Positions 577 to 9,872 are shown, counted from the first letter of the stretch. The stretch: DNA of 23,174 nucleotides from Macrostomum lignano (GCA_002269645.1 NIVC01002122.1:1-23174), one strand, 5' to 3'. Notes: generated from the sequence alone by a model not told the origin. Numbers and translations: made by a program.

Positions 577-897
577 TTAAATCCGCCTCGACGATACAGC
601 GTGAGGAAATTCATTCAACGAAAACTCCAGCATCTCGGACACGAGCTGCGGCGGCAGGAAGGCGTTGCTACGTACAACAGTAGACCAGAAACCAACTGAA
701 GCAATCTTCAACGCCATCAGGTTGTTCATAAGCAGCAGCAGACTGCTGCGGCGCAGGCTATCCGGGCAGAGCTGGCGCAACTCGCGCAGGTAGCTGGTCT
801 GCACCAGCTCGATTTGGCCAGGATCTTGCCAGCCATGTCCGGCAGAACCCTCAAATAAAAATATTGCTTTTAGAAGCAGAAATTCCGATCGGGTTAC
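577..897 (-). CDS. NR-B exon 4 (LBD H8-H12, stop TAA 579-577)
   Basis: Acceptor ctctttcttcag|GTAACC. Translates VTRSEFLLLKAIFLFEGSAGHGWQDPGQIELVQTSYLRELRQLCPD...LVSEMLEFSL, collinear with NR-A exon 2. Confidence 0.9.
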   Translation of the reverse strand, partial: VTRSEFLLLKAIFLFEGSAGHGWQDPGQIELVQTSYLRELRQLCPDSLRRSSLLLLMNNLMALKIASVGFWSTVVRSNAFLPPQLVSEMLEFSLNEFPHAVSSRRI

Positions 898-3800
898 CTG
901 AAGAAAGAGAAATTAAGAAAATTTGATTAAAAAAAAGCACGTAACAAAAGTGTGCCCAAATACTTTCCGAGAATGTACAGCCCCTTTTCTAAACCCTCCC
1001 CTCAACACGACTATTAATGTACACCTGCTCTCAACCTCCCCTCAACACGCCCTCAACAGTACACCAGCTTTAAGCCCTCCCCTCAACACGCCTATTAATG
1101 TAATGTACACCCGCTCCTACCCTCAACACGCCTATTAATGTACACCCGCTCCTACCCTCAACACGCCTATTAATGTACACTGGCTCTAACCCTCCCCTCA
1201 ACACGCCTATTAATGTAAACTGGCTCTAACCCTCCCCTCAACACGCCTATTAATGTACACTGGCTCTAACCCTCCCCCAACACGCCCACGAATGCGCAAC
1301 TTCAGTAACCCTTCCATTAAGAGCTCAACAGGCGCTAAACTTTCTAATTTGTAAAAAAAATTCACTCCTATAATTCAACACTCTTCTTGACAGAAATGAA
1401 TTCCAGTCACCTGCCACAGGGTAAGCCATCGAATCAAGCAGCGCAGGTGTTGACCAGTTTTCGGCGAGAAGAAGCCGCGAAATTGAAGACCGTATGCTTC
1501 ATTTATACTCAGGTCTGAGCAGAACACGATGTTGCCATTGTAGGGGACTGAGTTCATCGCTACCTCAAATGCGATTAATTCAAGGCAGTGAAGCTGCAAC
1601 AATAGCACCTGCCAAAAGAGATAAAGGACGCCTATCGTATTAGCTAAACTTCGGGATTCTAGAGTTTCTAAAAAAGGATATTACAATCCAAGAAAATTCA
1701 AGAACGAGACTCGCCGCAATTCAAGAATTGCTGTTCTCAGAAGCTCAGAACGGGATATCCGAATTCCAGAATGGGATATTCCAGAATCCCAGAATGGGAT
1801 ATTCCAGAATCCTAGAATGGGATATTCCAGAATTCCAGAATGGGATATTCCAGAATCCTAGAATGGGATATTCCAGAATCCCAGAATGGGATATTCCAGA
1901 ATCCTAGAATGGGATATTCCAGAATTCCAGAATGGGATATTCCAGAATCCTAGAATGGGATATTCCAGAATCCTAGAATGGGATATTCCAGAATTCCAGA
2001 ATGGGGATCCCAAAATTCCAGAATGGGGATCCCAGAATTTCAGAATGGGATATTCCAGAATCCCAGAATGGGATATTCCAGAATTCCAGAATGGGGATCT
2101 CAGAATCTTAGAATGGGGATCTCAGAATCCCAGAATGGGGATCCCAGAATTCCAGAATGGGGACCTCAGAATCCCAGAATGGGGATCCCAGAATTCCAGA
2201 ATGGGGGTCCCAGAATCCCAGAATGGGGATCCCAGAATCCCAGAATGGGGATCCCAGAATCCCAGAATGGGGATCCCAGAATTCCAGAATGGGGATCTCA
2301 GAATCCCAGAATGGGGATCCCAGAATCCCAGAATGGGGATCCCAGAATCCCAGAATGGGGATCCTAGAATCCCAGAATGGGGATCCCAGAATCCCAGAAT
2401 GGGGATCCCAGAATCCCAGAATGGGGATCCTAGAATTCCAGAATAATGCCAGATATGATGAGAATCACCTCCCACGCCACCCAATTAACTCGCCTTGTCC
2501 TGCATTGGCAGCGGGCCAAATCCGGGCACAGCTTTGGCAAACTTGACCAGGTCGGCAATGAGCCTGTCCGTGCACAGCGTCAGCGTGTAGGCCAGCCTGG
2601 CCGGGGTCTCGGCCACGCCGCTAGCAGACACGTCGCTAAGGCTAAACGTTGGAGAATCGATAGTGGCCAGCTGGCTTAGCAGAGTTAACGACTGCATTGC
2701 CGCAGGCGAATGCGGGTGCGGGGGCGGGAGCGGAGACGGCGGAGGAGGCAGCGGAAGTGTAGCGGCGGAAGTAGCTGCGGCGGTAGAGGCAGAAGCGCCA
2801 TTGGCAGGAGGGAAACTCGCCGTTGGCTGATTAGGAAAGTCGGAGGTCGATGAAGGTGGCTGGGAGCTGTAATGGAGAGGTATTTCATGGAATAATATGG
2901 GATTACACTCCGGCTTCAAGGATCCCAAATATTTGACATCTGGGGGCATTAACAACCTGGAAATCAAAGGATCTTGGGAGCATTGTAACCTGGGAATTCT
3001 TGGGATCTGGAGGGGTGATTGGGATCCGGAGGGATTAACAGTAGAACTACCAAGAGGGGGGGATTTCCCCCTCTGACAATTTTTTTTGCTGCGCCGGAAC
3101 GGAGCAACGCAGGCACACGAAATTCAAGAACACGGGCTAACTTTTTGTTGCGCACCTTCTCAAACAAGAATCAAGTCGCCAGCCCTCTAGACCGTCGAGA
3201 TATTCGACGATTCTGCCAGAAGGTCGGATTTTTCCCATAAGCGCCAGTGTATTCAGTGCACCCCTGTGCGCCAATCAGCACTGCGCTTCAGTGCAGCCTT
3301 GCCAAGTCCCCAAATTTTATCAGAACGTCGACCACATGTGTCTGCATAAGTTCTGACTTCGTTGGTCACTGGGCTTTACCCAGGTGGAGCTTCTGGACCT
3401 TCAACAGGTGGCACCAGGTGACTATGAACACCCTGAACTTGATTCTTGTTTGAGAAGGTGCGCAACAAAAAGTTAGCCCGTGTTCTTGAATTTCGTGTGC
3501 CTGCGTTGCTCCGTTCCGGCGCAGCAAAAAAATTGTCAGGAGGGATCCCCCCTCTTGGTAGTTCGACGGGCGGAAAAATGGCTTGGTATTCCTACTGTTA
3601 ATGGTTGGTAACTGGGGGGAATTAATGGGATCTGGGAGGTTAATGGGATCGGGGGGGGTTAATGGTATCTGGGGTGGGGTTAATGGTATCTGGGGTGGGG
3701 GTAAATGGTATCTGGGGTGGGGGTTAATGGTATCTGGGGTGGGGGTTAATGGTATTTGGGGTGGGGGTTAATGGTATCTGGGGTAGGGGTTAATGGTATG

Positions 3801-7900: not shown

Positions 7901-9872
7901 CTGCGGGACAGATGATGACAAAATATATCAGCTTTTTATAAGCTTGTTTGCCATTGTTTCTACTGACAGTAGGCTGTTGCAGTACGGGCTTGAAGTTTCG
8001 GCATAGAGTGCCTGCGAAGCTACAGACCACGCCTGTGGATCTGGGAAGGTGGCAGTGGCCCAGAAACTGAGGATCTGGGAGGCTGGCCCAGCAACTGGGG
8101 ATCTGGGAGGCTGGCCCAGCAACTGGGGATCTGGGAGGCTGGCTCAGCAACTGAGGATCTGGGAGGCTGGCCCAGCAACTGACACTCTGGGAGGCTGGCC
8201 CAGCAACTGCGGATCTGGGAGGCTGGTCCAGCAACTGAGGATCTGGGGATCTGGGAGGCTGGCGCAGTGTTAGCGATGAGTTCTTTCAGTTTCATCTTTA
8301 CATGACTACAAAGGAAAGGATAATTGGAGAAGCAGGAACTGACGACTCTTTGTCGTCAAAGGAAAACTTACGGAAGCCAAAGCGAAAACACTTTGCTAGG
8401 CTAAAAATGCTTTGCTGACTTCTGAAAATACGAGTACTTCCCACGATTAAGCACCTGGGATCACAGGGCACCAGCTGCTGTGCGAAGCGATAACAAAAGC
8501 ATATCCTGTCTTTTGCCCCCCCCCCTCCCGACCAGTTCTGGCAGTTGAAACGCTTCGGTTAAAAACATCGCTTTTTTGCTTGTCCATTAGCCTGCCTTGC
8601 TTGCCTGCCTGCCTGCCTGCCTCCTTGCCTGCCTGCCTGCCTGCCTGCCTGTCTGCCTGTCTGCCTGCCTGCCTGCCTGCCTGCCTGCCTGCCTGCCTGC
8701 CTGCCTGCCTGTCTGCCTGCCTGCCTGCCTGCCTGCCTGCCTGCCTGCCTGCCTGCCTGCCTGCCTGCCTGTCAGCTCGATTGCAGGCGCGGCAAACGAG
8801 TTTTAACTACACTTCTCTAGAGTAGCGCCAGCTGAGTAGCAGCTGACTGGATTCGAATCCGAGCATGTGCCAGCAGCGTACGTATGATCCGTGCGCGTAC
8901 TTAAGGGCCAGCGAAATTCTAGCTGTTAGCTGTTGGTCAACTGTTGTTTTGGCACTCTTCAAATAAATATAAATCAATCAATCAATCAGTCAGCCTGACG
9001 ATCAGTCAGCCAGTCCTCACCTGATCCTCCCTCAGCGCATAGCTGGCCGAGAACTTCAGACTGCCATCGTAGGGCACAGAACTGTAGGCCACCTGCCACA
9101 CAGTCAGGCTGAGCCAGTGCATCTGCAGCAATCGAACCCGGTCCTCCATAGGCAGCTGAGTGAATTCAGTCAGTCGTTTAGAAAAATCAATCAGATCAAC
9201 GGCCAGTTTATTAGTGGCGGCACCCAGCTGAGCAGTGTGCTCATCCGACTGGCCTAGGGAGCCGGCGGGCGAGCTGACGGACGCGGCCGATAGCTGCTCA
9301 GCATCCGCCTGCTGATGAAGCTGATCATCTGGGGTGCACTCGTTGAGCAGCTCGGTCAGTCGGCATACCAGGGCGCTCCGGTTCGATGCCTGATGGTCGC
9401 CCTGGACGGGCCGCTGAGCCAGCAGCTGGCGCATGTAGACAGGCGGCTCGCGGCCCAACGGCAGGCTGGCGGCTGATGCTGCAGCTTCGGCTGTTTCAAC
9501 GCTGTCAACCGCCGGCTGACTGCAGGAATCAGTCAGCAGAGTCGCCCCCGCTGATGCCTCAGCCGATGCAGGAGGAAGAAGAGCAGCTGTAGGCGATGAG
9601 CAGCGGACCAGAGCGGTCTGCATGCGGGCCTCCAGACAGCGGACCCACCGGCAGGCAGGGCAATGCCGCTTGCGACTGCTCTTGGGCACCGGGCAGCGGG
9701 AGCCGGAGCGCTGCACCGGGCAGAAGTAGGTCACGCAAGAGTGCACAGTGCGCTTGAAAAATGCTTTACAAGCCTCGCAGGTTACTGCGCCGTAATGATG
9801 ACCAGTTGCTTTGCGGAAGCAGATACTGCAAGACTCGTCTTCTAGGAGCTGCTGCTGCTGCTGTTGGTACAT
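7440..9872 (-). CDS. Nuclear hormone receptor NR-A (ERR-like P-box), 2 exons, ~437 aa if one base is restored at 7762-7765; frameshifted as given
   Basis: Exon 1 9872-9021 (284 codons) contains CSIC-x13-CEACKAFFKR and FSKRLTEFTQLPMEDR. Exon 2 7900-7440 encodes H8 (EFLLLKLVFLFD) in one frame and H9-H12 (YLRELR...LMSEMLKF) in the -1 frame. Confidence 0.85.
8037..8265. repeat. 28-bp minisatellite (GGATCTGGGAGGCTGGCCCAGCAACTGA), ~8 copies, NR-A intron
   Basis: Period 28 (8071 to 8099). Confidence 0.92.
8590..8771. repeat. (CCTG)n microsatellite, ~45 units with GTCT interruptions, NR-A intron
   Basis: Seen directly; produces the (PACL)n ORFs. Confidence 0.97.
9021..9872 (-). CDS. NR-A exon 1 (poly-Q N-terminus, DBD, hinge, LBD H3-H5)
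   Basis: ORF 9006-9872; donor GATCAG|GTGAGG at 9021/9020. Confidence 0.92.

Follow-up and report, generated by a model that had tools for sequence, protein, structure and literature searches.

The window analysed here, a stretch of 23,174 nucleotides from the flatworm Macrostomum lignano (GCA_002269645.1, NIVC01002122.1:1-23174), carries two nuclear receptor (NR) genes, NR-A and NR-B, that lie head to tail on the minus strand within positions 577-9872. Together with a third receptor gene, located immediately beyond the window's left edge, they form a tandem array, MlERR2 (NR-A), MlUn6 (NR-B) and MlUn7, which we consider likely to be explained by an NR3/ERR-derived expansion in Macrostomum. 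Earlier literature already covers the genes and their assignment to NR3/ERR. Since both the DNA-binding domains (DBDs) and the NR3 placement had been published, the locus is a correct re-discovery and not a new system. What is added here is the three-gene tandem layout, the connection of MlUn6 and MlUn7 with the MlERR subclade through their ligand-binding domains (LBDs), the gene structures including a GC-AG intron, and a probable assembly frameshift in the window copy of NR-A.

For each of the 61 M. lignano receptors the DBD was listed by Wu & LoVerde (2021, PLoS One 16:e0250750; PMC8363021). In these lists the DBD of NR-A corresponds letter for letter to MlERR2 and that of NR-B to MlUn6, and the DBD of the third gene is letter-identical to MlUn7. 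The supplement of the same work has MlERR2 and MlUn6 on one scaffold. MlUn6 is labelled there as having an 'atypical P-box', and MlUn6 and MlUn7 are treated, on DBD evidence, as unclassified 'divergent' NRs. Four MlERRs were announced as the first flatworm NR3 members, with high support within NR3 and a Bayesian posterior probability (BPP) of 0.56 within ERR in a Bayesian tree. According to an addendum (PMC8363021), Cheng et al. (2021, Front Mar Sci 8:645) counted ten M. lignano NR3 genes, of which four carry EACKA and the remaining six atypical P-boxes, referred to as 'the same members'. As the addendum reports it, both MlERR2 and MlUn6 were put into NR3. The conclusion drawn here, a lineage-specific, NR3/ERR-like expansion with atypical P-boxes, agrees with that of PMC8363021. 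The tandem arrangement is not mentioned in that paper, in which the word 'tandem' has no occurrence. The initial annotation of the window had called the locus notable if the host were a flatworm. The host is indeed Macrostomum lignano, but NR3 receptors in flatworms had already been published (Wu & LoVerde 2021).

Both genes are seen in a listing of open reading frames (ORFs) combined with a three-frame translation, which bore out the two head-to-tail receptors that had been proposed. Their features are as follows (window positions unless another accession is given; H1 to H12 are the LBD helices, AF-2 is the activation function 2 helix):

9872-7440, minus strand: NR-A, whole gene
9021-9872, minus strand: NR-A exon 1, 852 nt, ATG at 9872; DBD, hinge and LBD H1 to about H5
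9830-9621, minus strand: NR-A DBD, residues 15-84, string identical to MlERR2 (PMC8363021 S2)
9762-9779, minus strand: NR-A P-box CEACKA, residues 32-37
just after 9021, minus strand: NR-A exon 1 donor, CAG/GTGAGG
7901-9020, minus strand: sole NR-A intron, GT...AG, 1120 nt
7440-7900, minus strand: NR-A exon 2, LBD H6/7 to H12 with AF-2 PLMSEMLKF, stop at 7442-7440, one frame break
7762-7765, minus strand: C4 homopolymer in NR-A, -1 frameshift; the public assembly has C5 (…DAAPPLDEW…)
5614-577, minus strand: NR-B, whole gene, four exons
5205-5614, minus strand: NR-B exon 1, ATG at 5614; DBD and C-terminal extension (CTE); donor AG/GTAAGC, phase 2
5518-5300, minus strand: NR-B DBD, residues 33-105, string identical to MlUn6
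5450-5467, minus strand: NR-B P-box CNACKT, residues 50-55
2494-2866, minus strand: NR-B exon 2, hinge and LBD H1-H3 (…LTLCTDRLIADLVKFAKAVPGFGPLPMQDK)
1411-1608, minus strand: NR-B exon 3, LBD H4 to about H6 (VLLLQLHCLE…SVPYNGNIVF…LTLWQ)
577-897, minus strand: NR-B exon 4, LBD H7-H12 with AF-2 QLVSEMLEF, stop at 579-577
NIVC01000087.1 21494-23556, same orientation as NR-B: MlUn7, third tandem receptor, just past window position 1 at the left edge

Splicing provides a product of 437 aa for NR-A. For NR-B the product has 433 aa when exon 2 starts at the acceptor at 2866, as in the NCBI model P0001, and 463 aa when an alternative in-frame acceptor at 2956 is used, which adds 30 residues. Judged by the Pfam gathering scores, the spliced proteins contain both a zf-C4 domain (64 bits for NR-A and 69 bits for NR-B, cut-off 21.1) and a Hormone_recep domain (38 and 64 bits, cut-off 23.5). 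Each has two C4 zinc fingers with eight ligand cysteines, and the AF-2 helix reads LMSEMLKF in NR-A and LVSEMLEF in NR-B. The 27/37 identities across finger 1 and the linker that had been counted initially were found to be exact, and the signatures RTVHSC(V/L)TY and CPACRW occur in both proteins. Over the whole DBD 45 of 74 alignment columns are identical, and the LBDs share 44-45% identity.

The third gene was found in a second sequence of the same assembly, NIVC01000087.1 (GCA_002269645.1), which matches the window at 97-99% identity along its whole length. There MlUn7 follows NR-B about 5.5 kb further downstream and has the same orientation. It has the P-box CNACKA and a D-box of 21 residues; an intron filled with a (TGTCTG)n-like repeat divides this D-box. 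The public gene models that cover it (P0002, P0005) are fused or garbled.

The assignment of the family to NR3 is supported by the LBDs. A homologue search with NR-B led to Macrostomum lignano proteins. When a profile of four family LBDs was searched against the PDB, ERRbeta came first (2.6e-19) and was aligned end to end through AF-2, and all of the 60 matches listed were ERR (NR3B) or NR3C. Using the NR-B LBD alone, only NR3 receptors were present among the 60 matches listed; with the NR-A LBD alone the matches listed were NR3 except for one RAR at rank 23. An exhaustive search of all 1.84 billion representative proteins with a three-sequence LBD profile returned 464 matches. The DBD-bearing matches that followed the Macrostomum paralogues were all ERRs with EACKA, starting from 2e-22, and down to E ~1e-13 the DBD-bearing matches had the EACKA P-box as well as canonical ERR finger 2 and CTE. 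For fragments without a DBD the best match was an ERR or a family member. Further down the list, ERs set in at 6e-13, GSCKV steroid receptors at 7e-12 and receptors with a non-NR3 P-box at 6e-9. Steroid receptors aligned with the family profile over H3-H9 only. An AlphaFold (AF2) model of the NR-B LBD (pLDDT 86) comprises 10 helices and a beta-hairpin, and its best 50 Foldseek neighbours were all NR3, a result that is weak as independent evidence since the multiple sequence alignment behind the model is rich in ERRs.

In neighbour-joining (NJ) trees with 200 bootstraps the family was monophyletic in 78% of the replicates for the DBD, 91% for the LBD and 96% for DBD and LBD combined, in agreement with the lineage-specific expansion that had been suggested. 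A clade of NR3 including the family was supported by 9%, 52% and 76%, respectively. The values for the LBD and for DBD and LBD combined are moderate ones from a crude method. Regarding the NR3/ERR-like character that had been claimed for the two genes, the LBDs were NR3-like in every test run, while the likeness to ERR came from similarity ranking only. Taken together, we read the family as a member of NR3 that is most probably derived from ERR and strongly modified, but not as a canonical ERR.

This modification becomes apparent in the comparison with canonical ERRs (NR3B; human ERRalpha/beta/gamma, Capitella, Tubulanus). CEACKA is found in all canonical ERRs recovered and, as had been noted from the start, in NR-A; NR-B carries CNACKT instead. 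The LBDs of NR-A and NR-B are most similar to ERR LBDs over their whole length, at an identity of about 25-30%, and share with them an AF-2 of the type L-x-x-E-M-L-E. The motif S-V-P-Y-(D/N)-G after H5 is common to the Macrostomum family and the ERRs, including spiralian ERRs (S-x-P-Y-(D/N) in its general form). Also the string LTLCTDRLIADLVKFAKAVPGF in NR-B exon 2, which had been read as H3-like, aligns with ERR H3. Unlike in canonical ERRs, the DBDs of NR-A and NR-B have no internal intron and an extra Cys precedes finger 2. The spacing of finger 2 is x8/x10 in NR-A, x12/x9 in NR-B and x21/x9 in MlUn7, compared to x5/x9 in ERRgamma, such that the 5-residue D-box of ERR (C-x5-C-x9-C-x2-C) is replaced by loops of 8, 12 and 21 residues. 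Within the LBD the H3 Glu of ER/ERR is exchanged for Leu in both proteins, and the H5 Arg for Ser in NR-A and Asn in NR-B. An ERR is recognized by monomer binding to TCAAGGTCA and constitutive activity, and the T/A-box of its CTE reads the 5' TCA extension. From the CTE only M-x3-(L/V)-(V/L)-R is kept in NR-A and NR-B.

Inside the family, NR-A, NR-B, MlUn7, MlERR1 and MlERR4 form a subclade with 96% NJ bootstrap. Compared with PMC8363021 it is thus the LBDs that put the 'unclassified', atypical-P-box receptors MlUn6 and MlUn7 together with MlERR1, 2 and 4. NR-A groups with MlERR1 (88-99%), and NR-B tends to group with MlUn7 (65% for the DBD, 37% for DBD and LBD). A direct sister relation of NR-A and NR-B, arising from one local duplication, was rejected by the trees (0-0.5% bootstrap), and the initial description of the two as sister paralogues had to be given up. 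At the first P-box position MlERR1-4 have E, MlUn6 and MlUn7 have N, MlUn1 and MlUn4 have H, and MlUn5 has V. The simplest history would be a single change of E to N before MlUn6 and MlUn7 separated, with A to T following in MlUn6. Given the H or V at the first position in other members, the base-reading P-box residue is a repeated target of change. A literature search on P-boxes CNACKT, CNACKA or CNGCKT provided no relevant literature.

We therefore picture the array as follows. Three orphan NR genes, MlERR2 and MlUn6 in the window and MlUn7 past its left edge, are arranged head to tail and would belong to a Macrostomum-specific, fast-evolving expansion of at least nine members (MlERR1-4, MlUn1, 4, 5, 6 and 7) that descends from an NR3 ancestor, most probably of the ERR type. 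Each gene encodes a conventional zinc-finger DBD and a 12-helix LBD with intact AF-2 helix, and from general knowledge of the family the products most likely act as DNA-binding transcription factors. After duplication the first P-box residue would have diversified and the D-box loop grown to 8, 12 and 21 residues in MlERR2, MlUn6 and MlUn7, which together suggest that the paralogues may read different half-sites, dimerise differently, or both. For NR-B a changed half-site specificity, as proposed initially, would be plausible. With the H3 Glu and the H5 Arg lost, which anchor the ligand in ER and ERR, it is unlikely that a ligand is bound in an ERR-like or estrogen-like way.

Several observations weigh against an origin from ERR. 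The RGGRQKY A-box of the ERR CTE is absent from NR-A (ARMQTALVRCSSPTAA) and NR-B (ANMRPGLLRSVEAGTETKRYPR), and the DBD scores slightly higher in the PDB against NR5A2 and SF-1 (68 bits), its best matches there, than against ERR (62.6-65 bits). The DBD on its own hardly groups the family with NR3 in the NJ trees (see above). In the LBD trees the family stands beside the GSCKV steroid receptors in 36% of the replicates and with ERRs in at most 14%. The reference set was moreover picked by similarity to the query, the NJ method is crude, and the Foldseek outcome depends on an ERR-rich alignment. With ERR grouping this low, and with neither a D-box nor a CTE A-box nor an H3 Glu/H5 Arg pair of the ERR type, strict ERR membership is not supported. 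The family might instead be an older independent NR3 lineage, related to steroid receptors or to other spiralian NR3 members, or a relative of NR5/NR6 with a convergent EACKA. The missing ERR hallmarks would fit such an origin, as would a grouping of the M. lignano family with NR5 in 15% of the DBD-only replicates and a score of the NR-B LBD alone that is slightly better for MR than for ERRalpha. We regard it as unlikely nonetheless. Canonical ERRs come first with the family LBD profile both in the PDB and in the large protein library, the post-H5 motif is shared with spiralian ERRs, and EACKA is kept in four family members. The published Bayesian tree also has the MlERRs with the ERRs, if weakly. 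The branches of the steroid receptors and of Macrostomum are both long, so that an attraction between them is expected in NJ trees, and the 36% grouping is likely due to such long-branch attraction. An affinity to NR5A was rejected, because NR5 LBDs come much lower in the ranking (P0157 at about rank 146) and the grouping with NR5 drops to 0-1% bootstrap once the LBD is included.

A different objection concerns the state of the two genes in the window. NR-A has four C where the intact frame needs five, with a premature stop about 55 codons later, and this frameshift speaks against a set of intact, diversifying receptors. If it marked a true null allele or pseudogene, the array would be decaying instead of diversifying, a view to which we give little weight. 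The difference is a single homopolymer base, a common type of assembly error. Apart from this base the gene is identical to that in NIVC01000087.1 throughout (2430 nt, made up of 1310 coding nt and the intron of 1120 nt); C5 is present there and a 437-aa protein is annotated, and the C5 reading is found in the independent database protein P0017 as well. An assembly error in the homopolymer is the simplest explanation; alternatively, the window copy may be a very recent null allele. The neighbouring NR-B is under purifying selection. NR-B itself could be taken for a non-functional duplicate in which the odd P-box, the long D-box and the unusual donor are signs of degeneration: CNACKT occurs in no other DBD among those recovered or listed for comparison, the D-box is over two times as long as the canonical one, and exon 2 ends at a non-GT donor. 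Yet its eight zinc-ligand cysteines, its FFKR motif and its AF-2 helix are intact, its LBD is modelled confidently, and its frame is open through all four exons. The GC donor of intron 2 (AAG/GCGAGT, 2493-2488) is surrounded by the consensus typical of GC-AG introns, and the second haplotype retains it as GCAAGT. In NR-B the two haplotypes differ by 7 synonymous and 4 replacement changes (pN/pS 0.19), and none of the four replacements is in the DBD or LBD. Degeneration of NR-B is therefore very improbable. The open frame, the GC-AG intron retained in two haplotypes and the low pN/pS fit a working gene under constraint.

In the remainder of the window no other NR genes were found. Likewise, no receptor genes were called within 10 kb of MlERR1 or MlERR4, which are located on other contigs, and a six-frame motif scan did not provide a second DBD at the MlERR4 locus. 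Upstream of NR-A, at 12995-21412 on the minus strand, there is a multi-exon gene rich in Arg and Glu. Its last ORF (12995-13597) matches Pfam CSPP1_C, the domain of centrosome and spindle pole-associated protein 1, at 5.5e-12.

Over 5615-13419 the divergence of the window from NIVC01000087.1 is mosaic: there are 0 substitutions in the NR-A gene and 0.2% upstream of it, compared to 1.2% in the spacer between NR-A and NR-B and 6% in NR-B intron 1. This mosaic suggests a haplotype switch near 7440. The locus is also rich in repeats. The NR-A intron contains a (GCCT)n microsatellite and a 28-bp minisatellite, and a 32-bp array follows directly after the NR-A stop codon (7193-7444). Each intron and flank of NR-B has its own minisatellite, at 141-525, 992-1286, 1761-2444 and 3633-4936, with units of 36, 40, 22 and 22 bp; the last one has 62 copies and is strongly G-skewed. 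Arrays of 18-49 bp fill the rest of the window in the same way, including 10413-11336 onward. NR-B intron 1 furthermore holds a perfect inverted repeat of 96 nt whose arms are 260 nt apart (3081-3176, 3437-3532), which could be a foldback or MITE-like (miniature inverted-repeat transposable element) insertion or an assembly artefact.

Two further observations were made on database proteins. P0154, P0108 and P0161 have an EGCKG P-box, and one of them is named 'ERR2' in Lingula anatina. This name is probably wrong, since the EGCKG receptors fall outside NR3 in the NJ trees. In the protein P0020 of the mite Medioppia subpectinata (3384 aa) the N-terminal part of the LBD profile matches at 12 separate places; P0020 is a repeat protein or else a tandem array that was mis-predicted.

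A comparable burst of lineage-specific duplication, partly in tandem and with diversified P-box residues, is known from the supplementary nuclear receptors (supnrs) of nematodes, which are derived from HNF4. The two systems differ in parentage, NR2A in nematodes and NR3 in Macrostomum, and in size, with hundreds of genes in the former and about 10 in the latter. The duplications of M. lignano receptors have been likened to the nematode supnrs before (PMC8363021).

NR3 receptors were long thought to be absent from flatworms until M. lignano was shown in 2021 to have them, and to this the locus adds detail only: three family members stand in one head-to-tail array, and what changed between the neighbours is the first P-box residue and the D-box loop. 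It is a tentative idea, read from EACKA, NACKT and NACKA and from D-boxes of 8, 12 and 21 residues, that truly different half-site and spacing preferences may have arisen within one recent array. If so, the array would offer, in a small space and in an experimentally tractable flatworm, a natural experiment on the re-specification of a recognition helix and a dimer interface after duplication. A variant that we rank below this re-specified array, as less likely, has the family as an old NR3 lineage apart from ERR, and would bear on early steroid-receptor evolution in Spiralia. Should the DBDs of MlERR2, MlUn6 and MlUn7 bind different sites, the array would provide a handy model of how transcription factors are re-specified.

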